Of a stretch of DNA of 64,000 nucleotides, positions 37,543 through 64,000 are shown in pieces. The position numbers and the translations under genes are program-made. Location of the stretch: the NCBI GenBank assembly GCA_047495785.1, contig JBLDXI010000028.1:310001-374000 (forward strand), written 5' to 3'. Position 1 is the first letter of the stretch; each line of letters starts with the position of its first letter. The notes beneath the pieces are model-generated. The model was not told the DNA's origin. It did no database searches and saw only the letters and a list, made by a program, of their open reading frames with translations. The stretch comes from Lepidodermella squamata (lineage: Eukaryota; Animalia; Gastrotricha).

Positions 37543-39224
37543 TTAACATTGGAGCTTGTGGATCTGGCCAATGCTGACGGGCTCGACAGCCTCGAGCTTC
37601 TGGCCCTTGCGGTCAACGCAGTGGCAAACGGAGCCGATGCATTGGATGGGGTTGTAGCTGCCGAGTTCGTCGCACGAGTAAGTCAGACCGACCATGCCAG
37701 TCTTCATGAAATCAGCCTGAGCACGGGCGCATTCGCAGTCCATCTTCGAGGCGAATCCAACGTTAGCAGAGTGGCCGGTGGGGATGCCCTGGCTGTCAAC
37801 GCACTGGCAGACGGCTTCGCGGCACTGGCGGGGGTGGTACGAGCCATCTTCGAGGCACTGAGGCTTGTGGCGGCCGAGGCACCTCGGGCAGGTCTGCTCG
37901 GAGAGTTCGACCTCACGAGCGCAGGCGCCCTGTTCGACGGCTTGGCGCTTGTCAGCAGCGCAGTTCAAGGTCGAGATCATGTGGATGGGGACGGCTTCGA
38001 TGGCTTCAAGACGCTGACCGACCTGGTCGACACAGTGGCAAACAGAGCCGATGCATTGGACGGGGTTGTAGTTGCCGAGGGCGTCGCACGAGTAGGTGAG
38101 ACCAACGAGGCCAACCATGCCCTTGCGCTGGTAGTCGGCTTGTTTGCGAGCGCATTCTAAAACAGAAAATTGTGATCAATGAATTCGACAAGGCATTTTT
38201 TAATTTTCGGAAGGCATTGATTTAGGGGTCGAGACTCTGAGATTTGCTTACCGCAGTTCATATCAGCAGCCTGGGAAATGTGAGCCGAGACTTCAGTCGG
38301 GCGGCCCTTGGAGTCGACGCAGGTGCAGACGGAGCCAAAGCACTGGCGGGGGTGGTACGAGCCATCTTCACGGCAGACTGGTTTCTTCTGGCCAAGACGA
38401 ACCGGGCCTTGTTCGAGGAGCTCGAGCTCACGGGCGCAGGCTCCCTGTTCAACAGCATCACGACGACGACGGACCAAGCAGCCGCCGAGTTCTTCCTTGC
38501 GCTCCTCGGGCCTTGATCCGAGCGAGTCGATCGGCTTGCCGAAATCGTTGACGCAATAGCAAACGCCGCTACGGCACTGAACACGCTCGTAGTTGCCCAT
38601 GGAATCGCACTGGCGGGTGAAGGCGATCGTCGACGTTTTGTGGTCGTCGCGGTCACGAACGCATTGGCAGTTCATCTGCTGGTGTTGGCCGATGGAGACG
38701 GCGAAGTCTTCGATTTGCTTACCGCGCTTGTCGACGCACATGCAAACAGCTTCGCGGCATTGGACTGGGGCGTAGGTGCCATCTTCGAGGCATTCGGGCA
38801 AATGAGCGCCCATCATACCGTTCTGGATGTCGCGGCTTTTGGACAGGACTTCAGCGTGACATGGGCCCTTGACTAGGGTTTCTGTAATACAAGTTTGATC
38901 GTTAATTTTGAGAAATGTATTTTTTAACTTACCCAGCTTGACACACTGCTTGGTAGCTGGGTGGCACTCGAGGCCCCTTCCGCACTCTTTCTTAGACGGG
39001 GATCCGAGGAGGTTCGAGGCGCAAGATTCGCCTTCGTTCAGTTGTTTAACGCAAGCCGGGCAGCAACCACAGAATCCGCCGTGGATGTCAACGCGACCAT
39101 CGCAAGCTTGGATCTCGAGCATGGCCGAGGAGCAGTCGGCATTGCTGCAGATATCGGGCGTGCAAATGATAGCTGAGCACACTTGCAGGGTGCAAGCAGC
39201 CGCAATTGCTAAGATGAATCTCAT
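37543..39224 (-). CDS. Secreted IGFBP-like domain plus six thyroglobulin type-1 domains (thyropin-like protease inhibitor)
   Basis: Exons 39224-38933, 38881-38252, 38156-37543 (introns 51 and 95 nt). Signal peptide, GFCGCCPACV motif, six QC...CxCVD/N..G modules. Confidence 0.9.
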
Positions 39225-39252
39225 TTCGGTGGGTAGAACGAACTTGAATAAC

Positions 39253-39286
39253 GACTGGAATTAACTAGGTGAACCCGCCTTTTATA
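39253..39286 (-). promoter_or_regulatory. TATA box and Inr-like element of the thyroglobulin-repeat gene
   Basis: TATAAAA on the minus strand at 39280-39286, with CCAGTC ~25-30 nt downstream and the ATG 30 nt further. Confidence 0.6.
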
Positions 39287-40770
39287 GGGTCTCTCCTGGT
39301 TATGGGAGTCGCCATCGGGTCCCAGAGTTTTCTCACGCATGGCTGTTTTTTTATTATTAGGGCTAAGTGCTATCTAATTCGAGCTATTATCGTGTTGTTT
39401 TTGCTGCCTGGTTGGGTCCATAATGAGCGCGTTGTTGCTTTATCTCGAAAGTTCGGTGGGAGACACGAAAAAAGGCAAAGGCAATCGCCTATCAAGCTAT
39501 ATATCAAGCTCACGCCGTGGTAAAAATATTGAGCTAGGGCATGCTAGATAATGCATAAGTACTTGTTACGTTGTTATTATGGACAAAACATGATCTTTCA
39601 TCAACCATTAACCAGAAAGTTAATCAGTGAGTTGATTTGCTGAAATCGATGCATTCTCGCCAGTAGAAGGAGGCCTGTCACACTTTCGTATGTCGGCTGA
39701 GCTGGGAGTTGTCACGCTTGGTGAGCGCTCTAACCTGCGAACGAGAAATAGGCCTCAGTGAAGCCTCGTTTATGAAAGGCGAAGCCATATCATAGAGTTC
39801 AAAAATTATTATCAGTGAAACCTGAAGCCACAAAATTATATTTGAAGCAAGCTGTCTGCATAGATCCTTCCCTCAATCCTTCAAGGGTAGATCTGTGTGC
39901 CATAATATGAGACGTACCAGACAGAATAGGTCCTCATCGTTTCTGTTCTTGCTTAACACAGTTGGGGTGACTACGCTCTGATGAATTAACTATCAACATT
40001 TCCCTCTGTCAAATTCTTTTTCGGCTCTAATAATAAGGGCCCTTTATATACGGCACGTCTCACTTAGTGTTGTGATGTATAGAAGTTGGCTGAATAGTTT
40101 AATTTAATAATTCTCGACACGGAAATGTGCTATCGTCCGCATCCTGAGCTATATAATACAATGACCACAGGTTTTGCTTCGATTTGACTCCTCAAGGGCC
40201 TCCATAGCAATGGCCTCTCGCCGAGCCCTGGACCGTCGACTCCTGCGAGGTGGACTCTGTGATTGCGCAGCTGTGAATAACGCGGGTAAGGCATTGCACA
40301 GATGTGTTAAAAAAGGCTGAAAGAGAAATAGGCTGAATTAAAACTGCCAACACTTCAGTCTTTTCACGTGAGCATTATGAACACCGCCATAGAGAACGGG
40401 ACTCAATGGAACCAACCAATTCCCTTTTTACGTATCCGCCTGACGAGGTGGTCATTCAGGGGGTGGTTATTCTGCCTATAATTCAAGTTTTTAATCGATT
40501 TTTCAGTTTTATAACACCCGTTGTGTAAGCGTAGTGACATCAATTGCACAGTATAATTTATTGCCGACACTTCAAGCGATAAGTCCCAAGCCGAGCAGTA
40601 GTTGAAATCACACATTCACCCACACGAATAATATTGCATACCCCCGTAACCAAACCTAGAACCAAACATATCGATATCTTTCACCTTTAAAGAAATTAAG
40701 GCGCGGTGACAAAGCAGCGAAATCCCCACGGTATGGCGTGGCGAACGATATCTTATGTCGATGCCGCTGA

Positions 40771-43213
40771 CTAAACCTCACGCGGTCTGCCAGGACGACC
40801 CTTGCCAGCAGGCGCCGGTGGTGGAGCTGGGGCGTACACAGGAGCAGCTCTCGGTGTCTTGATGTCCGCCATGCCCTGACGGGTCAAGCGGCTCTGCTCG
40901 GATGGAACTTCAACCTCACGCGGTCTGCCAGGACGACCCTTGCCAGCAGGCGCCGGTGGTGGAGCTGGGGCGTACACAGGAGCAGCTCTCGGTGTCTTGA
41001 TGTCCGCCATGCCCTGACGGGTCAAGCGGCTCTGCTCGGATGGAACTTCAACCTCACGCGGTCTGCCAGGACGACCCTTGCCAGCAGGCGCCGGTGGTGG
41101 AGCTGGGGCGTACACAGGAGCAGCTCTCGGTGTCTTGATGTCCGCCATGCCCTGACGGGTCAAGCGGCTCTGCTCGGATGGAACTTCAACCTCACGCGGT
41201 CTGCCAGGACGACCCTTGCCAGCAGGCGCCGGTGGTGGAGCTGGGGCGTACACAGGAGCAGCTCTCGGTGTCTTGATGTCCGCCATGCCCTGACGGGTCA
41301 AGCGGCTCTGCTCGGATGGAACTTCAACCTCACGCGGTCTGCCAGGACGACCCTTGCCAGCAGGCGCCGGTGGTGGAGCTGGGGCGTACACAGGAGCAGC
41401 TCTCGGTGTCTTGATGTCCGCCATGCCCTGACGGGTCAAGCGGCTCTGCTCGGATGGAACTTCAACCTCACGCGGTCTGCCAGGACGACCCTTGCCAGCA
41501 GGCGCCGGTGGTGGAGCTGGGGCGTACACAGGAGCAGCTCTCGGTGTCTTGATGTCCGCCATGCCCTGACGGGTCAAGCGGCTCTGCTCGGATGGAACTT
41601 CAACCTCACGCGGTCTGCCAGGACGACCCTTGCCAGCAGGCGCCGGTGGTGGAGCTGGGGCGTACACAGGAGCAGCTCTCGGTGTCTTGATGTCCGCCAT
41701 GCCCTGACGGGTCAAGCGGCTCTGCTCGGATGGAACTTCAACCTCACGCGGTCTGCCAGGACGACCCTTGCCAGCAGGCGCCGGTGGTGGAGCTGGGGCG
41801 TACACAGGAGCAGCTCTCGGTGTCTTGATGTCCGCCATGCCCTGACGGGTCAAGCGGCTCTGCTCGGATGGAACTTCAACCTCACGCGGTCTGCCAGGAC
41901 GACCCTTGCCAGCAGGCGCCGGTGGTGGAGCTGGGGCGTACACAGGAGCAGCTCTCGGTGTCTTGATGTCCGCCATGCCCTGACGGGTCAAGCGGCTCTG
42001 CTCGGATGGAACTTCAACCTCACGCGGTCTGCCAGGACGACCCTTGCCAGCAGGCGCCGGTGGTGGAGCTGGGGCGTACACAGGAGCAGCTCTCGGTGTC
42101 TTGATGTCCGCCATGCCCTGACGGGTCAAGCGGCTCTGCTCGGATGGAACTTCAACCTCACGCGGTCTGCCAGGACGACCCTTGCCAGCAGGCGCCGGTG
42201 GTGGAGCTGGGGCGTACACAGGAGCAGCTCTCGGTGTCTTGATGTCCGCCATGCCCTGACGGGTCAAGCGGCTCTGCTCGGATGGAACTTCAACCTCACG
42301 CGGTCTGCCAGGACGACCCTTGCCAGCAGGCGCCGGTGGTGGAGCTGGGGCGTACACAGGAGCAGCTCTCGGTGTCTTGATGTCCGCCATGCCCTGACGG
42401 GTCAAGCGGCTCTGCTCGGATGGAACTTCAACCTCACGCGGTCTGCCAGGACGACCCTTGCCAGCAGGCGCCGGTGGTGGAGCTGGGGCGTACACAGGAG
42501 CAGCTCTCGGTGTCTTGATGTCCGCCATGCCCTGACGGGTCAAGCGGCTCTGCTCGGATGGAACTTCAACCTCACGCGGTCTGCCAGGACGACCCTTGCC
42601 AGCAGGCGCCGGTGGTGGAGCTGGGGCGTACACAGGAGCAGCTCTCGGTGTCTTGATGTCCGCCATGCCCTGACGGGTCAAGCGGCTCTGCTCGGATGGA
42701 ACTTCAACCTCACGCGGTCTGCCAGGACGACCCTTGCCAGCAGGCGCCGGTGGTGGAGCTGGGGCGTACACAGGAGCAGCTCTCGGTGTCTTGATGTCCG
42801 CCATGCCCTGACGGGTCAAGCGGCTCTGCTCGGATGGAACTTCAACCTCACGCGGTCTGCCAGGACGACCCTTGCCAGCAGGCGCCGGTGGTGGAGCTGG
42901 GGCGTACACAGGAGCAGCTCTCGGTGTCTTGATGTCCGCCATGCCCTGACGGGTCAAGCGGCTCTGCTCGGATGGAACTTCAACCTCACGGGGCTTGACA
43001 GGACGACGCTTGCCAGAAGGGGCGGGTTGCGGAGCTGGGGCGTGCACAGGATCAGGTCTCGGTGGCTGGATACGGGTCAAGCGGCTCTGCTCGGATGGAA
43101 CTTCAGCGGAAACCGTGGCGACCTTACGGGTAAAGTTTTGAACATTTTATACAGGGTGCTTTTATACGGCGCAACGAACTTACCAGAAGTACCACAGCGG
43201 CGTAGTGGAGCAT
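40771..43213 (-). CDS. Secreted Pro/Arg-rich tandem-repeat precursor A
   Basis: Exon 1 43213-43184 (MLHYAAVVLL), 61-nt GT-AG intron, exon 2 from 43122 (VATVSA-EVPSEQSRL...). One variant unit, then 15 full and 1 partial 46-aa repeats. Same gene structure as paralog B. Confidence 0.8.
40774..42990. repeat. 138-bp coding tandem repeat, ~16 apparently identical copies
   Basis: Unit encodes TRQGMADIKTPRAAPVYAPAPPPAPAGKGRPGRPREVEVPSEQSRL on the minus strand. Confidence 0.97.
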
Positions 43214-45889
43214 TTTATTACTAGAATTTGAAATTCGGTCCGAAAAAGTTTAGCGTTTTGCAAAGCTAAATTCTTGATAATGAAAGAGAGTTAGGCTCGT
43301 TCCTTCCTTCTCGGGTGAATTTTCCACCTGCCGAGCGCCATGATGTTTGGGAGTTTACATTAACTTGCACCCTTGTTCGGGTCATCATTCCGGTGTTTTT
43401 TGCACGGACTGATCTACCATCATAATATGTTGGCATAACGGGGAAGAATGTGCGTGAAAAATTTGAAAACCCACATGCACGCATGCCATTGTACGTGAAA
43501 ATTACGCCATGTTACCCCACTTGGCGTTTCAGGTTCTAGCGAGTCATTCAGTTATTAAGAAATACTGTAACGCAAGTGCAGTATTTTAATAAAAACGGAA
43601 ATATAAAGTAAAAAATTGAAAGGGAGAGGTTATGAATAATATAAAACATCTTCTGTGAGCTTTGTAGTGGATAGCGGAAAATATTCGCCTCACTGCCAGC
43701 TTTTCAGAACCAAGGCGCGGAATAGCGACCTGATGAAGGCGAATATTTTAGCCATTCGTATAAAAGCTTCCAGATATAGTTGTGTTATCCGGGCCACTAT
43801 CATCAATTTCTTCACAGTAAAGTTACCTGTTCAGACGGATTAGGCAATAATATTGAAAATTAAAATCCAACTTGTAACTTTGCATGAAATTTGCAACAGC
43901 GAATGATTTTCAACTGCTGAAAATCATCCATCACTTTTTTCTGCGATTTAAAACTCCACGCTCATCCGCATCGACATTGAGCGCATTAATCTCGAGGTGA
44001 AAAATGGAAAAATGCCAAGTCTATCTCTCGAACTGCAAATTTGCATCGAGCCGCTCAATCTTGGGTGTCAAGCTGCTACGTAGCTTCAAGAAGAATTGTC
44101 AGTCAACCAGCGATATGGCAACGACATGTTCGGCCCGACTGTTTGTTGCACCATCCTCCTTTGGCAAGTTGAGGCTCGCTCAAGTCTCTAAGCAATCGGC
44201 AATAATTCTCGGCCGCGGTAAATCTTTCGCTGCCTCTAACCTGATCCAATGGCATGCCCCGCTTGTGGATATCTCTTATAATTTGCGACAAATCCCTCAG
44301 CCTTGTTGATTTTCTTTCAGAAACAGCCCAGGATAGCAGTACTTATTTCGGGCTGTTTAATGGCATATTTCCCGCTATGATAACCCGGATACTCCAGATT
44401 AATTAGACGGAGACTTGGAATATTGATGAGAAAAATAGTTGGAAATGGCAAGGAAACAATGCAAAATTGCAGGACAGGATACATAGCAGGAGCAGGATAA
44501 GTGAGTTATTTCGTTGTCCGTCTCAGTCAAATATGCTTGTGCGGAGACTCTGGAGGAAGAAAATGCTCAGGAGAAAGAAAGAGGGATGGATTGCACTTTA
44601 ATCATGAAAACTAGGCTAGTAACTGCTAAAAATAAGTTGAACCGTTATATGTCCGGCTCCCTATCAGCGGCGGCTTAGATTTCATACTCGCTTCTTTTTG
44701 TCGAAACTTCTCTAAACTCATTGAAGCATGAAAACGCGCTGTAAGGAAAAAATTGACTCACTGCGAAGATCACATTCATCGAAATGTAACATGTGGGATC
44801 GAGAAGAAAAAGGCTGTAATCTGTATTTTTCGACCAATTTCTGCACGCTGATAAAGTTTATTAGCTATAATTCGCCAAGCTATCAATTCATAGGTATATT
44901 TTTGCTCACGCATTCACAAATTTAATTTAGCTAAATTCAGTGTTAAATACAAACGTAAAAACTGCAAATAGGAAGAAATTATTGCAAGCAAAAGCAATAC
45001 TATAAGTGGGAAATTCACAAGAATGATGAAATTCGATATTCCATGCGATTTTACAAGAAATATCCTTTAGGCCAATTACTTGTTTCGGGAGATGAGCTCC
45101 GTGCCGTAAACCCGACTGCACCAGTTGGTACTAGTTGCTTTCTGCGTTTTGAGCGACTGCCTCTCGCCGACACAAACCCTGGAAGATCGCCCAAGCCCAA
45201 TTTGGATCTTGGGTAGTCGGATTGCATAGAACGACGCTTGCATAGCATATAACCTATTGGAATGTGCGTTTCAAAATTATAGGTATAACATCGATCATGA
45301 AAGCGAGAATGAACTTATACCAGAATAAGAGACAAGGCAACGACGAAGTTGTTCATCTTCTAACAGGAACTTTTTATTTTCAACTATAGGTATATGAGTA
45401 GCAGTAGAGCGAAATTTGACAGAAATGAATTTCGTCCTTCTATCTTTCCTCATTCTTCAGTTAACGTGCAACGCACCTGGCGGAATGACAAACAAAAGGA
45501 GGAAAGTATCACGCAAAAACTCTAGGGAAAGAAATGAGCGCCGAAACGGGTGGCTGTTTAAATTCTCATATATTATCTCTCCTTCTCAACAAGCAGGAAA
45601 TTAGTCAGCGGAAAATTTGTAAGAAAATTTAGCTTGGATGAGTGGATCGAGTACATATTTGAATTGTGTGCAAATTTGAGCTATGGATCTCTAAAATCAC
45701 CAATCGCCAATAGATTGAGAGATGAACAAAATCTATAGCAATTCACTAGAAGCAGCCGATCAATTTCTCTGTCACTTGCCTAGATAGTAGCTTAAGATTG
45801 AAAACTACCGCAACAATATCGTTAAATTTCTTTCAAAACCTGTTCCAATAACACCTGAGGGTCCTCCTTTTATCGGAATTAACGGTAAG

Positions 45890-50444: not shown

Positions 50445-51813
50445 ATGAGTCTAGGTCATCCTAATAAAATTCTCGCGAATTTAAGATTATTGCTCGCCTT
50501 TATTATTGGTGTTTTATTGGCTCTTCACATCGATTTATCGGCAAAAATCGAAGTACGATTGTCCAGCGATAATTTCTCGCATCAACGATGTGAGGTCAGT
50601 TTTTTCAACAATTCAGCAACAAATTTCAAATTCACATCAGCCTGATGAAGTGATAGCAAGACGGTCGAAGGCTCGAATTCGAAGGATGAAAGAAATTTGC
50701 GAGATAATTGAGCGGCGAGGCGACCTTTACCAGCCGCTAAAAACTCCGGAATGGCGATTTTTCTCTTGGGCAGCCGCTAACAACATCACTTCAAATTGCT
50801 AGTATGCTTTGTGAAATTTCAAAAATATTTAAATTAATTTTTAATTTCAAATATCAGCTTGCCCGATTTTTGGTGGAACGATCTGGCGATAAATGACAAA
50901 TACAAACTTGTTTACTGCGCGTAAATTCACTTTTATTTTTTTTTTAATTTTTAATTTGTCTGATTTTCTGAATTTATTTAATTTATTTTTACTGATTAAA
51001 GGACTCCGAAGGTCGGTAATACCAACGTCCGGCTTTATCTGAATCACCTAAGTGAAAATCCCGAGATGGAATCCTACCCATACAACCGATCTGAAATGCT
51101 GCAAATTCATCGGCTCGGATCGGGTCTGAAACACTCGCGACGCTTGACCGAATATTCGGTTAAAGAGGCTAAAAAAATCATGGCTACTTTCAAGAAAATC
51201 GCGTTCATTCGCGATCCAGTCGAGCGTGTCGTGTCGTCGTGGCGTGAAAAGTTGTCCACGGCTGAATCAGACGGCATTTGGCGAGATCACTACAAGGTAA
51301 GTATTTCGAAAATTTTCAATTTTCGGTAGCTTTCGAATAAGTATTATTAAAAATTCAATTTTTAAGATAGTTGGTTCAGAGGTGCGGCAAAGAATATGGA
51401 GGAACGCCTCGAAGTCAGAAATCGATATCGGCCTGCCAGTTCGACTCGACGATTTCATCAAGTATTTGAATACTGAAAATTACCCGCGAGAGCTGGAAGC
51501 TCATTGGCGCGGTCAATTGTATCTGTGCCATTTCTGCGCTATCGACTACCATTTTGTTGGCCATTTCGACAATTTAGCGTGTGATTTGGAATATTTTGCC
51601 AGGCAAATTACTGGCAGGAAAAAAGTGCCGAGATTACCGGAGCCATCTGATAAACCAAGAGCTGGAACCGATCGGTACCAGTTTGATACTAATACGAAAG
51701 GTGCGGCTTACTTGGACTTGGAAGCTAGGAAGACGTTGGATCGTGTTGTCGCGAAACATTTTTCAATTGATTATTGGTTTTTAGGCTTGAAAATGCCCAA
51801 TTTTTCGCATTAA
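50445..51813 (+). CDS. Carbohydrate sulfotransferase 2 (CHST8-14 / Sulfotransfer_2 family)
   Basis: Exons ~50445-50594, 50641-50801, 50858-50920, 51002-51296, 51367-51813. 5'-PSB motif LVYCATPKVGNT is assembled across an intron; 3'-PB motif FIRDPVERVVSSWREK; HWRGQLYLCHFC. Confidence 0.88.
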
Positions 51814-52845: not shown

Positions 52846-55453
52846 ATGTCCAAATTTACAGGTTGCTTCACATATCTTCAAAAATCAAGGTGAGTTCCTA
52901 AAATCTCCACAATTTACCTGCCGATCCAGATTCCTCGGGCAAATTTCTTTCCATTTTTACGAGCGAACTAAATTTTAAAAATTGAAAAAGGCGTTCGTCC
53001 AAATTTAGGACCTATTATTATATCATGATAGACGATATTATTACTGAAATATTGGATAACCGTGGGCACTGCAGCGACGTTGCAATGGCGGGAATTTGGC
53101 GAGGTTCCGGAAAGTATCACTCCATCGATCTTATAAAATCGGGTGGTTTCGGCGATGTATTCCGTTGCAAGAAAATAGACGCCGACGATACGATTTTTGC
53201 CGCGAAGCGCGTTTACAAGTCTGCGATAGCTGCGTTGACATTGGGACGTCCTAATCTTTGCGAGAAAGTGTGGAAAATGGCACAGAAAGAGGTTGACTTT
53301 TACGCTTCTCTTTTGCTTATTTATGCTGCTCTTTAAACACATTTCAGGCTGAGAACATGCAACACGTTGAATGCAAGAACATTGTCTCGGTGATCGAGTC
53401 TTTCGAAGGTTAGCTTTATTGGAAAGTTTATCAATAGGATTATTTTAAAAATTGACGTGTCAAATGACAAATGGGCAATAAAAATGTAGGCTCGCAGCAC
53501 GATTTCAGGGCAAAATTTGCCTTACAAAATAAACAAAATAAACTGAACGTCTGCTTAAAATTTGAGGAATCATGCCAAAATTCATGGAAAAAACAATGCC
53601 GATTGTGACAAGACGCAGACCGAAACGGCGAAAAACAGGCATGCTAAAAGGGCTATATTGCAAATAGCCACATTTTAGACCTTAGAATTTAGAATCCTGC
53701 CTAAAACTCGTTAAAATTTGACCTATAAAATTCACCCAGTTTTATGCGCAGTCCTTCGTAGAGATTCAGGATTCAATTAGAAGCGATTGTAGTTCTGTCG
53801 ATAAGCTAAAGTTTATTCATTTTAGAATAATTCGCTCAACGTTTTTACCAGTGATCTGAATTTTGAAATTGTTGAATTTTCGGTTTTTACAAACGAAAAA
53901 CGAGGTTACGAAAACGCGTAGCCATTTTTCCACTTGAAAATAAAATAGTTTTTGGTGAAGTACAAGGGCCCTAAAATTGATATTGGGAAAAGCTCGAAAA
54001 TCGACCTAATTCTAGTTCTAACCGCCCTAGCCCCCTAACCCCAGTTCCTAATCATCGGTTTAGAAAAAATATCCGAAAAGTTGCCTTGTTGATCATTTGT
54101 GTTAGGTGCCAGCTTTTGATTTGAAATTTGGTGCAGCTAAATGTTGATTTCCGAAAAATTCTAAGAATTTTTGGCAACGAATGATTTCTATAGTGAATGC
54201 TACGTCTTGCACAGACTTTCACGCTGAACTTTAAAATAATGTATTTAAAATTATACGATGGTCTATTTTAATATCTCTGGATATTCTGAAAAGTGGTCTC
54301 AGGCCCAAAAAATATTGCGAAATTTAGTTCCGCTTACAGCTAATTTGGTTCCGGTACAGGAGGACCCGTATTATGTTTTTAAATTAATTTTGAAAGCTAT
54401 TAACCTCGGCCCCCATGACACGGCCTGGTCTGAAAAATATTGTCTTGTATTTCAGAAAATAGCGTGGATGGGCCTGTTTTTTACATTATTATGGAATACT
54501 GCGAGGACGGGTCGTTGCGAGATGCCATCAATGAGATGAGGGCGAAAAATGAGCGATTCTCGATGCTGACAATTCAATCTTGGTCGAAGCAGATGATAAA
54601 TGCGCTCAACTTTGTTCACAAACGCAACCTGGTGCATCGGGACATCAAGCCTGATGTAAGTTCGAGAAGTTTTCATTTTAAATACTGTGCAGCAAAGATT
54701 CAATTACCTATAACCCTGAAAGAAAGGAAAAGGGTAACCGGCCAATAATAGATTGTACATAGTATAGATCTCCGAAATTACATTTTTTACAACATTTATA
54801 GCCCCTTTGAGAAGTATGAGCATGTGCAAGTTGTTTCCGTCTGTGGAATAGCGCTAATCGGATTGTTAGCATCAAAGAGGATAAGAAAATTGGATAACTA
54901 GATTTTAACCTTTTCCGTAATCGTTTCATTCAATTCGCTTCATTTCCATCTTATTACTGTTTTCATATTCAATCTATCAGAATATCTTTCTTTGTTCGAG
55001 ACGCCGCGTGATCAAGCTGGGAGATTTTGGGCTGGCGAAAGATAAAACTGAGTAAGCCGCTTGCATTCAGATTACAATAGCATGTGAATTATTGTCTACG
55101 ATCTACGAAAGGGTCACTGATACATTGGCTGGCACTCTTGCTTACTTTGCACCGGAATTTGCGACTGGTTCAATTTATACTTTGAAATGTGATAATTGGT
55201 CGCTGGGAGCTACAATTTATGAGCTTGTTTCTCTCGACATGGAGGTTGGAACTCTTATTTTTTATAAAAATCTTGTGTTTGATTGCAAGAAATTGCTTAG
55301 TTCAAGTCACCAAAAAAGGCATCGGAATTTGGCTATCGCGATGCGGAAAACTTGGATGACTTGCTGATCAATTTGATGAGGGAGAAGCCGGAGCAGCGAT
55401 TCACCATGTCACAAGCATCTGGACATCCATTCTTAAGTATAATAATATCTTGA
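52846..55453 (+). CDS. Ser/Thr protein kinase (NEK-like, family uncertain)
   Basis: Exons 52846-52889, 53009-53291, 53348-53408, 54456-54655, 54981-55051, 55112-55244, 55301-55453. Motifs SGGFGDV, FAAK, IIMEYC, HRDIKPDN, KLGDFG, GTLAYFAPE, DNWSLG, PEQRFT...HPFL. Confidence 0.88.
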
Positions 55454-55731
55454 ATTTCTTTGATACAAGGAGGAAAGTTCCATTGCCCCATTTTTTCTTC
55501 CCGTTATTGAGCTTGGAACCTTCGAAACCGCCGTGCACTGATTGGTCAGCTTGTCACTTTTTCAAACCTGACTTCGGTCTTGGGTGCAAAGCGTAGGCTG
55601 ACTAACTGCGGGCGGCATTGTCAATTAAACGAAGTTGACATATTCGAAATTTTGATGCTTCCTCGAATATAACAACGAAACCTATCTAAAAATCTCAATT
55701 ATTATGGAGTGTCGCGGGAAATGCATGTGAA

Positions 55732-57588
55732 ATGGGGATAGAACGCTTTCTCATTTCTCAGTCGATAATTTGTAAACCCTCTGTCGTTGCAGCCTTGCAG
55801 TACGTTGTTCTCATCGGAGCGACAGGTAGCGGGAAGACAACGATTGCCGAGGGATTGATTGGCCGTGAATTGGAGGCGAATGAGACTCGCGATTGTGCCG
55901 TGAGCGTTACAACTGAAACCACTGTTTATGGAATGCCGCTGTTCGACTTCGCCGACACGCCTGGTTACGAGCCTATGGACAAAAGGGTCGAACACGCCAT
56001 ACACATTGCTAAAGCGCTATGCTACCGGCTTGTGACGCGAATCTTCATTATTTGCAAGTTTGACAACCGAATCGATAGAATGGTTCGAGACGTCGAGACC
56101 GTAGTCGATCCTATGGCAGAAGACCTGGAAGATAACATGACCATCATGGTGACACATTGGGATCACGCCGACAATTTGCGGACGAGCTCAGCCGATCTTG
56201 AAGGAAAGATTCGGTCTACGATGCTGCATCGCTTCAATATCAAAAGCGTCGTGTTTGTTTCCAAATTGAATACAAATTACGAGCAGGTCATAGGCGAATT
56301 TATCGGCCGAGACGACCTGCCTGGTGCAAAGGAGATCAACATTTCCGTCGACAATCTTTCTCGCTACTTCGACTTGAAGAAAAGTGAACGGGGAATTTTG
56401 AGATCGGCCCAGGAAATGAATGAAAAAGCGAACGTTTTCGTCAGCTGCGTGATGGAGAAGTTGCAGTCAATTGAGGACATTTTCGACAGGCAGGATTTTA
56501 TGTTTTCAATGCTGAAGGAAATACGAAGCTATTGTGATGAACTTGTCCAACGGTTTGTGGATGAAAACGGGCTGGACGCCAATCATTTCGATGATTACTT
56601 CTGGTACGAGAAGGTTCGAGAGGAACTTAACGCCATCATTAATGGTTACTTCGCCCATTGCCAGCAATTCAGGAGCTATTTGACGGACAGTCTTGATAAA
56701 GAGCATCCCTTTCGAAAGTGCCCTCACTGTGGGTTGATATGGACTCAGGTTCAAGGTTGCAACAATTCGACGAATTGTGGCGCCGTTCCAAGAGGCGATT
56801 CAGTGCGATTAATTTCCCGCTGGAATAGCGACGGCAGATCTTTCTTTATTCGAAGAACTGAGCCTCCAGTCGTTACACATGTTCAGACGAAGAAGCTGGA
56901 GTTCCGCAGGCGGCAGCTCGAAAGTATCAAAGTTGAAAGTTATAAAGAAATTTTCAAATTTCTGCTGGATGATGCGGACAAGTACGACGTCGAAGAATTA
57001 AGGCGACAAGTAATCGAAGTTGTCATGGCACACGATCTCCACGAAATCTGGATTTACATTTTGGCCGAGCTCATCGCTGTTAGGGCAGGGTTAATTCTGA
57101 GTGACAACCGTCCCACCTCGTATTTGTTCGGATATTTGATTGATAAAATGTTTTCACTTCCACTAACTAACGAAAGTCTGCTCTTTTTATGTGAATTTGT
57201 TAGTTTATTGGACGGTAAATCTGATAGCATCGATGCTTTGAGCGGTTTCAGTAATTGGATGTCAGCCCTGAAGCCCATTGGCCAGCGCCAGCAACAGCTC
57301 AGACGTGCATGTGCGGCCCTCAAAACTTTCGACGTAAAGTTGGACTTGATCGAAAAAGGATATGGTTGTGATGAGCCTATCAGGTGGGATGAGATGGCTA
57401 TCGTTAGCATTCCCGCCGACTTTTTCGACATGACTGAGCTTGAACTCAAACGAGCTGTCTCGTCTATTTCCATTTCAAATCCGGGCGTGGATGCCCACGT
57501 GAAGGAGACATTGGCGCAACGAATTGACCAGTTAAAGGTCAATCTCTGTGAATTCGGCAACAGGCCACCTGCAGCCGACATTGCTTGA
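55732..57588 (+). CDS. Intronless P-loop GTPase (AIG1/GIMAP/G-domain-like) with a C-terminal Cys-rich motif
   Basis: G1 GATGSGKT, G2 SVT, G3 DTPG, G4-like THWD; KCPHCGLIWTQVQGCNNSTNCG; 618-aa open frame. True start uncertain (may be a terminal exon of the kinase). Confidence 0.85.
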   Translation: MGIERFLISQSIICKPSVVAALQYVVLIGATGSGKTTIAEGLIGRELEANETRDCAVSVTTETTVYGMPLFDFADTPGYEPMDKRVEHAIHIAKALCYRLVTRIFIICKFDNRIDRMVRDVETVVDPMAEDLEDNMTIMVTHWDHADNLRTSSADLEGKIRSTMLHRFNIKSVVFVSKLNTNYEQVIGEFIGRDDLPGAKEINISVDNLSRYFDLKKSERGILRSAQEMNEKANVFVSCVMEKLQSIEDIFDRQDFMFSMLKEIRSYCDELVQRFVDENGLDANHFDDYFWYEKVREELNAIINGYFAHCQQFRSYLTDSLDKEHPFRKCPHCGLIWTQVQGCNNSTNCGAVPRGDSVRLISRWNSDGRSFFIRRTEPPVVTHVQTKKLEFRRRQLESIKVESYKEIFKFLLDDADKYDVEELRRQVIEVVMAHDLHEIWIYILAELIAVRAGLILSDNRPTSYLFGYLIDKMFSLPLTNESLLFLCEFVSLLDGKSDSIDALSGFSNWMSALKPIGQRQQQLRRACAALKTFDVKLDLIEKGYGCDEPIRWDEMAIVSIPADFFDMTELELKRAVSSISISNPGVDAHVKETLAQRIDQLKVNLCEFGNRPPAADIA

Positions 57589-57879
57589 TATTATGAGCTT
57601 TCAATTTGACCTATTGCTTGCAAGATTGGATTATATTATGGACTGTGACGTTGCCAACACTTACATTCTGAAAGTGCTAGAAGCTATTCAGAGCATTCTT
57701 TTTCTCAATTTTTCGTTTTTTCCTGTCAAGTTTCAAGTTCTAATAATAAGTTATCACGAATAAAGCTGTAAACTATGTTTTGTTAATTTGTCGATATTTT
57801 TTCGTATGAGTTCGAAACTTTAAAAGGTTGAAGCTGCCGCGCAACTGGTGAAATTATTGATACCAGGCGATACCTTCTT

Positions 57880-57932
57880 CCAGGTTAGGGTTGCGGTCAG
57901 GGTTATGGTTGGGGTTGGAGTTAAGGTCAGTT
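57880..57932 (+). repeat. Degenerate telomere-like (GGTTAG)n hexamer tract, probably part of a dispersed element
   Basis: AGGTTAGGGTTGCGGTCAGGGTTATGGTTGGGGTTGGAGTTAAGGTCAG; similar reverse tracts near 23245, 40645 and 54020. Confidence 0.5.
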
Positions 57933-58385
57933 ATGTAAAATAGCAAAGTACCACAATATTGTGTAAAAAAGGATATAATACCAAATAATGTTGTGCAAAT
58001 AGGAATAGGGGCAGAAAATGGGGAAATATCATCCATAATCCAATACCTTGTTGGCATTTTTGGCCAAACGAGCTGAAATTTATTTTCAAAATACTTTTAG
58101 CCAGATATGCATTTTGAAATGCATCGATGTTTAGGAGGCACAGGATATTGAATGATAGCCAATCCGGGCCAAGACAGTAAAAATGACTCTTGTGATCTTT
58201 GCTAATAAGTTTCCTGCTTCTTATTTGAGCAGGCTCACAAACGAACAAACCACTCGAAAAATATCGATAATTTCTTATTTTTACTGGATGATTGATTATT
58301 CGTGCGCGTGTCTGTGAGGCACACGACTAAATTTACGTTTTCTAACTACTCTAAATGATTTTTCATTTTATTTATTCCACAAAAA

Positions 58386-59859
58386 TGATTTACGTGAGAA
58401 AATCTTCGATTTTTCAGGCCATTGGGCCATTTATTTTCGGCTTCTCCGCCTGTTTACTACTTGTCCTTATTTCGATTTCCCGGCTTGAGAATGAACCAAT
58501 GCCTGCACCCGAACCCATATCTGCTCCGAATTTGGTATCAGCGGGCGAATTGCTGTCGCGATCGGTTAGAATAATGTGCGTGATGCTGACGACGCGGAAA
58601 TTTCACGAAAGCCGAGCTAAATTAGCCAAATTATTATGGGGCAAAAGATGCGACGGCCTTTTCATTGCAAGTGACGAGCATGACCCAGTTTTGGGCGCGA
58701 CAAAGGTCACGAGTAATTCAGACTATCGAGCTTTATGGTACAAAACGCGCAACGCTTTCAGGTCAGTATATGAACGGCAAAATTACAAGAAAATTAATTT
58801 GATTAATTTTTAAATTTCAGGAGGGTTTATGAGGAGAACGTTGATAATTACGACTGGTTTTTCAAAGTTGATGACGACAGTTATGTTGTGATGGAAAATT
58901 TGAAGCTGGTCCTTAGCCAATATTCACCTAATGAACCGCTAATGGTCGGCCGGCATCGTTACCATTTCCTCTCTGGATCTGGATACGCGATCTCCCGATC
59001 TGCTCTCAAGAGGTAAACATTTAATTAAAAAATACGTAATATTCGTGATCATGGATTTTATTAAATAATTACATTTTCAGTGAATAATTATTTGTAATTT
59101 TGAACAGATTTGGAGAACGTGGGAACAATGTCCCAGAATGCGTCCGAGGCATTCATTATAGCGAGGACATTTCAATGAGTCATTGTATGGAAAAACTCGG
59201 GGTAAAAGTTGGCGATTCTCGCGACGCTGAAGGCCGGCAGCGTTTTTTCCCGCTAAAACCCGTCGAGTACCTGAACGGAACCGTCGATACGGCCATCAGT
59301 TTCTACCCACCTGATTTCGACCTATTCACGCCGGGTATTGATGGGATCAGCGATACTGCCGTTGTTTTTCATCATTTGGATCATCTCGAGATGCAACTCA
59401 TCGAATGTAAGTGTGTAAGTGTAAGAGTAAAAAACTCTTCATTTTTTTTAATTATTTTGGAAATTCAAGTTCTGCTCTACGGGATGAGACCATTCGGTAG
59501 GACCAGCTACAAGATGGCGGCTGATGAGATGGAGATGACTGAGAGTGAATTGCTCAAAAATGGCTATGAAATCGCCGAAAAACGTAAGAAAAATCGTCTT
59601 CACATAAAATTCACAGAAAACATTATTTTCAAAAAAAATTTAAATCAATTTGAAATTTCGAACAACTCATATATTTATTTATTCTTTTTTAGAAAATTAT
59701 CAGCCACGCGAACCTCGATCCTATTTTCAGCGTAAAATCGTTGATATGATTCGAAATTTGAAACCCGAAGAATCGCCATGGATATTCCGTGGCCGCGATC
59801 TCAACAATAATCAGCCAACATCCAGCGAACAAGAACCGTCAAATCAGCCAAATCAATAA
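58386..59859 (+). CDS. C1GALT1: Core 1 beta-1,3-galactosyltransferase (T-synthase)-like, GT31
   Basis: TM anchor; VRIMCVMLT, WGKRCD, LWYKTRNAF, YDWFFKVDDDSYVVMENL, SGSGYAISRSAL, EDISMSHCMEKLGVKVGDSRDAEGRQRFFP across short GT-AG introns. Orthology untested. Confidence 0.85.
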
Positions 59860-59901
59860 ATTTATTTGCGAAATAATGTGATATAATAAAATAATTTGTT
59901 G

Positions 59902-61165
59902 TTAAACAATTTCTTCTCCTAGCCGAATGACAGTTCTGGAAGGTATTGTGAATCCTTTTTCACGAATTTTTGCAATGTTCAACGGATTGTGACTGTTAAC
60001 AGGCCGCCCGTCACGGTCTTGATTTCGACCCTGTTGCGACCACGTGAAATCCCACCATTCCGGGCTCGGCCACGTTGATAAATTCCACTTTTTAGCCAAT
60101 AAGCTTAAAATCGACTGGTCGTGGCGGTGTTCCACGAAATTCGAAATTTCACTGCCTAGACGACTCGGTTCGTCGGTCACAATTCGAGGGTCTTGAGCAT
60201 AGGTCAACCATTCGCTTACAAATCGGATGGAATGTATAGATTTTCTGAGCATTAAATAGCCACCGTAGATTTGCATGGTTTCGTTGAAAAATTGCACGTT
60301 TTTGTGGTCGATGTTCATTAGGTGATAGGTATCAGCTTTTGTCCATACATTGTCGTTGAAAGCTTGGTAGAAGACAACTACGTCCTGCTTCAACTCAGCC
60401 TAATTTGGGAAATTAAGAAATTTTTTAAAATAGTCCATGGTAACTTTTTTGACCTATCGATTTTTCAAATTTTTGAAATTGATGCGATCATGAATCATGA
60501 AGAGAACAATTATTGCTCAAATTAATTGCTATAACCTCAATTTCCGTTTATTAATTTTGAATTGAAAAATCAAATAAAAAATGTCTGAAAAATACCTGTA
60601 AGCAGACGTATTCTTCCAGGTTATTTATCAAAAATTTATCCGCATCAAGGTAGAGCAGCACATCCTCAGCGTTCATTTGCTGTATAAATCGAAAGACAAT
60701 GTAGGGTTTCCACAACCAGTAACCGGCTCCGCGTTTGCGCGACAGAATACTGTCCCAATTCTGGTCTCGAAACTTAACGTCTAGAAAAGATGGCCTAACA
60801 ACTATACAAGCGTCAATGCCTCTGATTGACACGGCCACTTGGCAGTGATCCTCGGCTTGTTTTAGATAAGGACCGTGTGAGCCATAGGTTATGACTATGC
60901 GGTATCCACGGGCCAGGTCGCATTTATGCTCCTGATCCAGAACAAAATCCTGCCGATCTGAGGTGAAAATTCGCAAAGAGTCAGACGGGCTGTTGTCAAC
61001 TAATTGATTCAGCCAGTTGATTTCGGTGAAATCTGTGGACGAAGAGTTCTCGCGGATGAAGCGTTTGAACCTGCGAGCTGGGTAGAAGTATATGTAAATC
61101 ACGACGAAATTGAGTAGAATCGAGATGAATAAAATGCATTGCAGTGCGGATCGCTTTACAATCAT
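59902..61165 (-). CDS. Putative type II membrane glycosyltransferase (RGAGYWLWKP...HRHDQS type)
   Basis: Exons 61165-60596 and 60399-59902 (196-nt phase-0 intron); N-terminal TM; YLDAD DxD motif; EHRHDQSILSLL. Confidence 0.7.
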
Positions 61166-62679
61166 AAAACCAAGTATCCTAATGACCAAGAAATGTCAGA
61201 AATGATAAGAAGAGTAATCGTTTGTGCGGCAATTCATCACAAAATCCATGAGGAGTGTGCAGAATTCCGAAAGCTTAAGAATGCAATCAGAAACCACAAG
61301 TCAACGTCAGAATACTTAGCTTTTCTTATATAAGACGGGCAGCAAGAGCCACTAATATTTGCGCACATGTACCTGGCCATTATTGCATATAGTAATGCGC
61401 TGATGTAATTGTGTGAATGAATGCGAATTGTTTACCCTTTACCCGAGGCAACTGCGAGCTCGGGCGAATATATAGGTGTGGTGGTACTGCGATGCAGCCG
61501 CGCACTGCAAACAATGCTTTGCGGGTCAGTGCGTGCGCGATCGCGGTTTTGTGTCACCGGAATGGCAAATGAGCGCGGTCCGCACGGGGCTGACAGATGA
61601 GCGACAACAGCGCGAATATTATTGCTTTATTGTTCTGATATACGCGGAGCCAACTCAATTGTTAGCTGATAGGTGACTCATTGGAATGGGCTGATGCCTT
61701 GGGGCCGGTACGAAGATTTGAGTTGAAAATTGAGGTTCTGGTTTTATTGTGGCAACATTTTCTCGGGCGAAATCGATTCTTGATATTTAAATAGGCAAAA
61801 GGCCAGCTATTGCGCAAAATTAGCTCAAAAATGAGATTTATCGATTAAAAGAGTAATAATAGCAATACTCTTAGTGAAAGCATGGAAATTAACATATTAT
61901 ATGATTCAAGAAATTGAGCGCTGAAAGCTACATTTCACTTGCTGTGTCCGGATGTGTGCCAAAATCGACATGTTGGCCGCAGTTTTTCCTGCCTGATTTC
62001 TCTTCGCATTGTCATTCAACTTCATTTTCGCTATTTGCTCAGCTTTCGCAATGATCACCACTAAATTATTGCAGTTTCCCATCCATTCCGCATCGAACCG
62101 TTTTGATGCGGGTGAAACCGCCGAAACGGGAAGTAATTCTTGCCAAATATTGACCCATTGTCGCAATATAGCGTCACAGCAAGCCCATTAGCTTCGCTCG
62201 AAATCTCTCGACAGGGCACAAAAAGCGGCAAAATCAAGAGGAGTGAAGAGCAACGCCATTTCTAATCATTGCTTTCATTCATTCATTCATTTGTGTTATC
62301 GATCAAAAGCGGACACTTTCGGAATAAAACAAACTACGCATTATTCATAGATGTAGCATGCAAATGCAGGATATATCCGGCAGTATTTATTGCATATGCA
62401 TCAGCGACCAATAAAATCGATTGTATTTATACAAGCGCTATAACTCTTTTATAGCCTCGCAGTTTCCGTCGCACACGCACGCTGTGAACCATTTTAGCTG
62501 ACCGTGTTTTTTACAATCCGCAGGCTGGCAATATTAGAGTTCCGCTGAGATTAGTTTTCGATTTATTTTGAACGCATTATTTGATTACACAAAGGATTGC
62601 GTGAATTGGCGGTTGGTCCTTGTGTGGAATTTCAGGCGACCTGATTTGCCAACATTTTTGTCCAAAAATATTGTTGAAA

Positions 62680-64000
62680 ATGTCTGGAAGCAAAGACTTG
62701 AATGCGACTATAACTAAAATGTGAGTTGATAGCACAAATTTGGCAAATTTGTTGCTGAATTTCGCCTTATTTCTTTAGTTCCGCGGAGCTAAACTCAGCG
62801 ACGGATTCTCGCAAGTTGGAGTTGCTTTACGAGCTGTTGAAGAATGAGACCACCCATATGGTTTCGATGGCAAGATTTGTCCAGCTGCTAACTCACACTG
62901 GTCTACGACGATCAGATCCTCGATTGAAACAATTCTTCAAGAAACTCAAAGTTTGTGCTGGACATTCCTCTGAAGAAAGTGACGAGGGTGGCATAAGTGA
63001 AGATTTACAGCTTTCCCGCGATCAATTCATCGACTGCATTCAGGTATGTGTAATTCTCATGTTTCAGGTACGATATAAGTTTTGGCTGATTACAGGAAAA
63101 TTGTGAATTGATTTGCCAAGCCTTGGAGGGCGAATTCGTTATTCCTGAATTTAACAAATTCTGCCGTTCAATCGACAATCTCTTTGAAAGCTGTCGAAGC
63201 AATGTTGGTGGTAAAGTGGCCAGTTACATCCCTCAACTAGCCCGGTTCGACCCTAACTACTGGGCTATCTCAGTTTGCACCGTCGACGGTCAGCGATACT
63301 CAATCGGAGACACAAAAGTGCCATTTTGCCTCCAATCTGCGAGCAAACCTTTGAATTATGCGATTGCTTTGAATGATTTGACTCCCGAGGAGGTTCATTC
63401 TCACGTTGGCCAGGAGCCGAGTGGCCGATCCTTCAATGAACTGAGCCTTGATTACCACAAAAAGCCTCATAACCCAATGATTAATGCAGGAGCTATCGCT
63501 ATTTGCTCCCTCCTGAAAACTGAATGGTCTATGTCAGATCGCTTTGACTACGTATTCAACGAATATAGGCGACTGGCTGGGGGTGAGTACGTCGGCTTCA
63601 GCAATTCTACGTTCCTTTCAGAGCGAGAAACAGCGGATAGGAATTTCGCCTTGGCCTACTACATGCAGGAGAATAAGGTTTTCCCAGGAAATGCTAAGCT
63701 GGCTGATACATTAGATCTTTACTTCCAATTCTGCTCGGTTGACGTGACGGCAGAATCCTGCGCCGTCATCGCCTCAACCCTAGCGAATGGCGGTATTTGC
63801 CCTCTAACTGGTGAGCGAGTTTTGGCTGGTGAAGCTGTGCGAAACACGTTGTCCCTAATGCATTCCTGTGGAATGTACGATTACTCAGGGAAATTTGCCT
63901 TTAAAGTCGGTCTACCGGCGAAATCTGGCGTCTCCGGATGTATCATGCTAGTAGTTCCTAATGTAATGGGCATCTGCACCTGGTCCCCGCCTTTGGACGA
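62680..64000 (+). CDS. GLS: Glutaminase, truncated at the window end
   Basis: Exons 62680-62720, 62779-63043, 63096->64000. TGLRRSDPRL, GKVASYIPQLA, catalytic CLQSASKP, VGQEPSG, PHNPMINAGAI, MHSCGMYDYSGKFAFKVGLPAKSGVSG. Confidence 0.96.

Follow-up and report, generated by a model that had tools for sequence, protein, structure and literature searches.

A five-cysteine module with local likeness to Rcat ends an expressed kinase–GTPase gene in Lepidodermella squamata

We analysed a stretch of 64,000 nucleotides from the gastrotrich Lepidodermella squamata (assembly GCA_047495785.1, contig JBLDXI010000028.1, positions 310,001 to 374,000 of the forward strand; hereafter the window, in whose numbering positions are given), focusing on a 618-residue open frame at 55732-57588 (+) that holds two cysteine motifs. 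A first-pass annotation made from the letters alone had described the frame as an intronless GTPase gene with a motif like that of Rcat, the domain of RING-between-RING (RBR) ubiquitin ligases. Both motifs proved real, lie in one frame at the positions then reported, and are kept in all three paralogues and in the wider protein family described below. The first half of the module, RKCPHCGLIWTQVQGCNNSTNCG at 56713-56781 (+), contains the putative zinc knuckle C330/C333, the loop cysteine C343 and then C349; the second half, GCDEPIRWDEM at 57364-57396 (+), contains C546, the proposed fourth zinc ligand, and a tryptophan that aligns with the Trp of Rcat FCW. These five cysteines, C1 to C5, are numbered by their place in the 618-residue frame; their codons are at 56719, 56728, 56758, 56776 and 57367, and the distance from C4 to C5 is 196 residues.

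The structure of the gene was established from RNA. An RNA contig of 2791 nucleotides from public run X1 aligned to 53074-57738 with six GT..AG joints (53289>53346, 53406>54454, 54655>54981, 55051>55112, 55242>55299 and 55436>55793), none of which was present in DNA run X2. The last joint coincides exactly with the predicted junction between kinase and GTPase. The seven exons, read from ATG 53025, stay open in a single frame for 887 codons, and an in-frame stop precedes that ATG. These results demonstrated that the exon under study is the last one of an expressed seven-exon gene, whose 887-residue product consists of a kinase, a GTPase, a stalk and a five-cysteine module. What had been called an intronless frame is exon 7 of this spliced gene, and it looked like a stand-alone gene of 618 residues because ATG 55732, at which that frame starts, falls within intron 6. 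The start of the RNA contig at 53074 is preceded by 26 loose letters, which look like the reverse complement of a SMART template-switch or cDNA primer; on the strength of this likeness, the 5' end of the contig is taken as a library artefact instead of a mapped transcription start, and it shows no spliced leader.

All seven exons are on the + strand. Exon 1 (53025-53289) begins at the probable start ATG 53025 and encodes the kinase N-lobe, with the G-loop SGGFGDV and the beta3 Lys in FAAKRV; RNA covers 53074-53289, and the Pfam Pkinase match is weak (E 0.084). Exon 2 (53346-53406) also belongs to the kinase and is bounded by GT..AG joints in the RNA contig. Exon 3 (54454-54655) runs from the kinase hinge to the catalytic loop (VHRDIKPD; Pkinase E 2.2e-13, 50.7 bits), exon 4 (54981-55051) supplies the kinase Asn and DFG (NIFL...KLGDFGLAK; read from RNA joints and translation), and exon 5 (55112-55242) the activation segment and APE (GTLAYFAPE; Pkinase E 2.3e-7, with RNA joints). 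The kinase domain finishes in exon 6 (55299-55436; ...EKPEQRFTMSQASGHPFL), which matches positions 226-263 of the 263-position Pkinase profile and whose GT donor directly after 55436 is used in the RNA. Intron 6 (55437-55792, 356 nucleotides, GT..AG) is in phase 1. The coding part of exon 7 (55793-57588, 598 codons and the stop) encodes the GTPase, the stalk and the cysteine module, and was covered by one RNA piece, 55793-57738, with zero differences. The stop codon is at 57586-57588, the 3' untranslated region reaches at least 57738, and an AATAAA lies at ~57770, ~180 nucleotides past the stop.

The domains of the product were identified by scanning the exons one by one; the 887-residue chain itself was checked for an open frame. 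Pfam Pkinase matched four of the six kinase exons (E 2.2e-13, 2.3e-7, 0.01 and 0.084), which together cover profile positions 1-37, 73-127, 155-192 and 226-263 of 263. The kinase hallmarks can be read in order: the beta3 Lys (FAAKRV), HRDIKPD followed across the exon joint by the catalytic Asn, DFG and APE. The solved kinases nearest to exon 3 in the PDB include CDPK, GCN2, ULK1 and NEK1. Judged by these motifs, the Ser/Thr protein kinase is apparently complete and active.

A TRAFAC-class GTPase domain follows at 55795-56364 (+), where MMR_HSR1 is the only Pfam family passed (E 6e-6; 26.7 bits against a cut-off of 21.9). Its motifs were read as G1 GATGSGKT (55816-55839), G3 DTPG (55954-55965) and a G4-like THWD (56152-56163). 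The AIG1/GIMAP assignment of the first-pass annotation could not be upheld. AIG1 (PF04548, 27-bit cut-off) gave no match to the protein at E<=1, and the only paralogue with any AIG1 match was L008 (12.4 bits, E 0.095); Roc reached E 0.005, below its cut-off. The GTPase profile of the wider family was closest to EngA/Der (1e-21), followed by GIMAP4 (7e-10) and then Era.

We modelled the C-terminal 398 residues with AF2 (predicted local distance difference test score, pLDDT, 79.6). The model contains a three-helix stalk between GTPase and module (56392-56691, +), the cysteine knuckle, a low-confidence stretch, a helix bundle, the second motif and a helical tail (57397-57585, +; model helices 342-389). 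The low-confidence stretch (model residues 136-164, pLDDT <50) and a bundle of ~8 helices (model residues 163-313) make up the 190-residue segment between C4 and C5 (56791-57360, +). A phmmer search found no relative of this segment among the best 150 of the 306 family members described below. The segment, largely helical in the model, is common only to the paralogues of this genome, and the corresponding spacing elsewhere in the family is mostly 45-70 residues. Paralogue conservation, family spacing and the modelled helices thus bear out the earlier claim that one cysteine module is split by a large helical insert.

Three paralogues with 44-52% identity lie on contig C1, on C28 at ~260 kb and on C28 at ~705 kb, and a near-identical copy lies on C34. 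The module was found in the genome only at the four kinase-fused loci and in the C34 copy. At the window locus the kinase exons stand directly upstream on the same strand, and each paralogue likewise has homologous kinase exons directly upstream. From the stop that precedes the P-loop up to the P-loop itself, none of the paralogues contains an ATG. The four loci share a phase-1 GT..AG intron whose flanking exons read ...HP(F/Y)L before it and L(P/Q)Y(I/V)V after it; this intron measures ~55-58 nucleotides in paralogues L007 and L008, ~390 in L009 and 356 in the window. The C-terminal tail after the module is conserved among the paralogues. In paralogue L009 (C28, ~705.9 kb) an extra intron of ~60 nucleotides with an in-frame stop was observed in the region of the helical stalk (L009 7880-7990), and neither the window copy nor L007 or L008 has it.

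The C34 copy (C34:1348378-1358000, opposite strand, within ~35 kb of the contig end) differs from window 54385-64000 at 109 of 9616 positions. Only three differences fall in 54385-60385 and most lie beyond 61.4 kb; just one, 57540 C>T, is a coding difference, and DNA run X2 also has that allele. Rather than an old paralogue, this copy seems to be a haplotype left uncollapsed or a segmental duplication of very recent date. As an independent paralogue under selection it was rejected, given 109 differences in 9616 positions and only three across the gene region.

The wider family was collected by searching a profile built from the four paralogues' C-terminal halves against 1.84 billion representatives. 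At E<=1e-3 the search returned 306 representatives, of which 53 passed E<=1e-10, with the best E-values reaching 1e-29; a fast word-index protein search with the whole 618-residue frame gave no match. The typical member has 400-520 residues, starts at the GTPase (often ...LPYAVLVG...) and continues through a helical stalk into the module, whose consensus reads R-K-C-P-x-C-x3-W-x-K-V-E-G-C-D-G-x-T-x-C-G, then ~45-70 residues, then G-C-G-x2-I-x-W. The window protein has all of the signature residues except the Lys, replaced by Gln (TQVQGC), and the second Gly, replaced by Asp (GCD). A member such as that of Physarum polycephalum (P0009) has the same GTPase, the same stalk and both halves of the module; members elsewhere stand alone and have a spacer of 45-70 residues, whereas the window protein is fused to a kinase and has a spacer of 196. 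No kinase-fused member was found among the best 150 of the 306.

Family sequences come mainly from transcriptome and metagenome assemblies, and the sole names attached to them are 'GTPase SAR1 family' and 'EngB'. Clusters of the family in the ESM Atlas are 98-100% eukaryotic and most often assigned to Ciliophora. One further member sits on a 50-kb contig beside retroelements of the LINE (long interspersed nuclear element) type, and is eukaryotic on that account. The annotator's statement that similar proteins occur in protists was correct, as the Physarum member and the mostly ciliate Atlas clusters attest. The GTPase-stalk-module part was thereby shown to be a member of a eukaryotic family that is large, uncharacterised and mostly protist. 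Among 55 members scanned with Pfam, 47 matched MMR_HSR1, 13 matched AIG1 (E<=1e-3) and none matched IBR. No ubiquitin-system domain occurred in 20 scanned members, ten longer ones included, and these ten contained no extra Pfam domain hinting at a function; an N-terminal CBM20 was found in one of the first ten members scanned. Our literature search turned up no account of the family, and none of Rcat domains that stand alone or of proteins combining kinase, GTPase and Rcat.

We then counted conserved columns in the best 150 of the 306, aligned to the hidden Markov model of the module with no preselection on the motif. The five cysteines were conserved in 147/148 (C1), 148/148 (C2), 147/147 (C3), 147/147 (C4) and 127/127 (C5) sequences. 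The first Trp was kept in 139/148, the Lys in 132/148, the second Trp in 123/128, an Asp or Glu 8-9 residues after C4 in 139/142, and a Gly at C3+2 in 134/143. The family is very divergent, with a mean column identity of 21%; only these five cysteines are conserved, and no His is. The cysteine of the GC motif, which had been put forward as catalytic, is C3 and thus invariant among these homologues.

Several observations on single members were made during this survey. P0001 (812 residues), the best match, consists of three near-identical tandem units of stalk plus module, ~260 residues each, with both cysteine motifs in each unit; the units may be genuine, making it a tandem-module protein, or may be an artefact of assembling a repeat. 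P0089 (1300 residues, 14 matched stretches) was rejected as a member, being a false positive from a translated low-complexity tandem repeat. Small hypothetical proteins of Nucleocytoviricota (79-105 residues) were among the predicted structures in the ESM Atlas nearest to a compact model of the module (template modelling scores 0.39-0.44), and may, on these models, be stand-alone versions of the module in giant viruses; a Foldseek search of the BFVD viral structures returned nothing significant.

To assess the likeness to Rcat we used as references seven Rcat domains from RBR genes of the same genome and ten IBR domains, also of the same genome. The window pattern matches the seven-domain Rcat consensus KxCPxCxxxxEKxxGCNHMSCxxCxxxFCWxC. 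In hhalign, the module aligned to Rcat with Prob 89.8%, score 36.2 and P 1.8e-6 over 22 columns, and family C3 fell on the column of the catalytic Cys. The score was 11.0 against reversed Rcat, at most 16.6 against ten column shuffles, and 17.8 (Prob 5.7%) against IBR; the positive control, Rcat against IBR, which are known homologues, scored 41.6 (Prob 94.9%). When the variable spacer was removed in silico, the alignment to Rcat grew to 41 columns (Prob 92.9%, score 38.1, P 3.8e-7; shuffles at most 21.3), with C1, C2, C3, C4, C5 and the Trp placed on Rcat C1, C2, the catalytic Cys, C4, C5 and the Trp of FCW. Longer queries gave Prob 34.5% and score 30.7 (four paralogues) and Prob 62.0% and score 34.6 (91-row alignment), so that the raw score is stable across long queries while the significance varies with the framing of the query. 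As far as the alignment goes, the first zinc site of Rcat, with an intervening loop cysteine at the catalytic position, appears to be present in the module.

The fold was compared with a compact module model (P0002 301-419, pLDDT 80.8). Residues 338-376 of HHARI (4kc9) superposed on model residues 15-96 with 2.0 Å over 39 residues and 26% identity; the ends of this range agree with the Cys-to-Cys mapping of hhalign, and the GC cysteine lies on the catalytic Cys. Weak fold matches repeatedly included the Rcat domains of Parkin, HOIL-1, RNF216 and RNF217. Neither the compact model nor the model of the window C-terminus had a Foldseek match at E<=1e-3 in the PDB or among viral structures. Sequence searches of the PDB, run with the protein and with the module profile as queries, returned neither an RBR nor any other informative zinc domain, and feature scores in the ESM Atlas did not exceed 0.80, a value in the range expected by chance. 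Global searches of this kind say little, and the comparisons aimed directly at Rcat are the more telling ones. The results demonstrated that the likeness of the module to Rcat, in sequence and in fold, is local but specific, pointing to Rcat and not to IBR.

The features that define an RBR ligase are mostly missing. Pfam models of RING, zf-C3HC4 and U-box matched nothing in the 618-residue frame (E<=1), in the kinase exons or in the 55 family members. Pfam IBR (PF01485) was absent from the frame at E<=1 and from all 55 members at E<=1e-3; the same model matches 34 times elsewhere in the genome. The second zinc site of Rcat (C-x2-C ... H ... C) is absent, and no conserved ligand follows GCGxxIxW. 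The RBR catalytic triad is Cys-His-Glu/Gln, with the His two residues past the Cys (PMC3940038); at that place the family has its Gly and the window protein an Asn (GCNNS). Since it lacks RING1 and IBR as well as the second zinc site and the catalytic His, the protein is not an RBR E3 ligase. From the earlier reading of an RBR Rcat-like motif there remain the likeness of the first half and the position of the GC cysteine on the catalytic column. Elsewhere in the genome we observed a cluster of at least seven frames matching IBR or Rcat in ~60 kb (contig C15:4032881-4093852), a sign that small RBR-like genes may have expanded in tandem.

Compared with Rcat of HHARI/ARIH1, Parkin, HOIP and HOIL-1, the module shares K/R-x-CP-x-C, a strand and turn of nine residues with a conserved Lys, G-C-(N/D), a next Cys 4-5 residues on and a further Cys with Trp at +6, the loop Cys lying between two beta-strands. 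Unlike Rcat, it occurs alone without RING1 or IBR, has one zinc site and Gly for the catalytic His, shows C-x5-C where Rcat has C-x4-C, and contains an insert of 45-230 residues between the third and fourth zinc ligands.

We consider it probable that this expressed kinase-GTPase gene captured its GTPase-module part, and that the module is most likely a diverged 'half-Rcat'. A stand-alone GTPase-module gene would have been captured by splicing behind an upstream kinase gene in this animal lineage; the GTPase-module part starts exactly where stand-alone members start, which fits the capture of a once independent gene. The module would then have been split by the lineage-specific segment of 190 residues, mostly helical in the model. 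One zinc would be held by C330, C333, C349 and C546, like site 1 of RBR Rcat, and C343 would be an invariant loop thiol off the zinc, in the beta-hairpin loop where Rcat has its catalytic Cys. With five invariant cysteines and no conserved His, one Cys is left free, whichever four bind the metal. Binding or hydrolysis of GTP may act by way of the stalk to control the kinase state and how far the module is exposed, and the module could serve as an effector or targeting end, possibly by means of a free reactive thiol. Lying between two of the zinc ligands, the helical insert could act as a gate for the site or provide a further binding surface. We infer homology of the module to Rcat over convergence, and on balance lean towards a true relationship to Rcat rather than a convergent zinc ribbon.

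An alternative that deserves weight, even though we think it the less likely one, is that the module is a convergent one-zinc ribbon, a structural, dimerisation or ligand-binding end-piece in which the fifth Cys serves as a ligand (a C1-C4 site) or in packing or redox. All fold scores were in the noise range and generic zinc ribbons scored like Rcat; only ~22 columns align confidently without editing of the alignment, and no Pfam or PDB sequence match to RBRs was found. However, the profile likeness favours Rcat over the homologous IBR (36.2 against 17.8), and positions other than Cys match as well (Pro, Lys, Gly-Cys-Asn/Asp, C-x5-W). Some members, among them P0003, P0126 and P0137, have a five-residue first knuckle (CPHPGC, CPNPEC and CPWGGC) instead of CPxC, a form typical of IBR and Rcat; the CPxPxC knuckle of some members also speaks against convergence. 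Finally, since all five cysteines are invariant at 21% mean column identity, the fifth needs a role.

It is improbable that, as a full acceptance of the first-pass reading would have it, the module is a working Rcat, in which C343 takes ubiquitin or a ubiquitin-like protein (Ubl) as a thioester and passes it on, making the protein a GTPase- and kinase-coupled E3 without RING1. The invariant C3 does fall on the catalytic column in both profile and structural alignments, one of the five cysteines must be free of a four-ligand zinc site that has no conserved His, and the near-invariant Asp/Glu 8-9 residues after C4 loosely recalls the acidic third member of the triad (PMC3940038). Against this, the protein has neither RING1 nor any other known domain for docking an E2, IBR and a second zinc subdomain are both missing, the family has Gly and not His at Cys+2, and none of the 20 scanned members has a ubiquitin-system domain. 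Isolated Rcat domains were unknown as of a 2014 review (PMC3940038), and we found no later description in the literature. A true role in ubiquitin or Ubl transfer is possible at rather long odds, and it is doubtful that the module is a minimal, RING1-independent descendant of Rcat whose loop Cys is a working nucleophile for acyl or ubiquitin transfer.

The proposal of a stand-alone intronless gene, a retrocopy or horizontally acquired, translated from ATG 55732 is very improbable: an in-frame ATG does stand 21 codons before the P-loop, stand-alone members elsewhere begin at about the same point and a mostly protist family makes a foreign origin of the GTPase-module part conceivable, but the only RNA seen splices across that ATG, the three paralogues lack an ATG there and share the intron phase, and L009 has its further intron of ~60 nucleotides. 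Retroposition of such a gene, as the first-pass annotation had suggested, is refuted by the splicing of the frame behind six kinase exons and by the paralogues without their own ATG; the argument had rested on an intronless stand-alone gene and falls with it.

Among known systems, the kinase-GTPase gene resembles ROCO proteins (LRRK2, Dictyostelium Roco kinases) in joining a GTPase and a Ser/Thr kinase in one polypeptide, an analogy that suggests intramolecular control of the kinase by GTP. Unlike ROCO proteins, it has the order kinase-then-GTPase instead of Roc-COR-kinase, its GTPase is Era/EngA-like and not Roc, and it has no COR, leucine-rich repeats or WD40. With AIG1/GIMAP proteins it shares a TRAFAC GTPase, a G4 of the T-H-x-D type and helices after it; unlike them, the window protein stays below the AIG1 cut-off, and EngA/Der is the stronger match for the family. 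The corrected gene model thus fuses a kinase to a GTPase, an arrangement that is rare and has its other known examples in ROCO/LRRK2-type proteins, and the small paralogous family would offer a compact system for how a G domain controls a kinase.

Rcat has so far been described only within the RING1-IBR-Rcat triad. A stand-alone, single-zinc version whose Cys at the catalytic position is invariant over hundreds of divergent GTPases would represent either a new route to cysteine-dependent transfer of ubiquitin or Ubl, or a clear example of an enzyme scaffold put to another use. If the loop Cys were a nucleophile, the protist GTPase family would constitute a new class of nucleotide-gated, E3-like cysteine transferases, and in the kinase-fused copies of this animal a single chain would combine phosphorylation with GTP switching and thiol transfer.

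In the surroundings of the gene, judged from motifs, frames at 51382-51813 (+) upstream resemble exons of a carbohydrate sulfotransferase-like gene, and frames at 58355-59735 (+) downstream a C1GALT1/fringe-type glycosyltransferase-like gene. The guanine-cytosine content is 0.51-0.57 at 38000-44000, compared with ~0.40 in the rest of the window.

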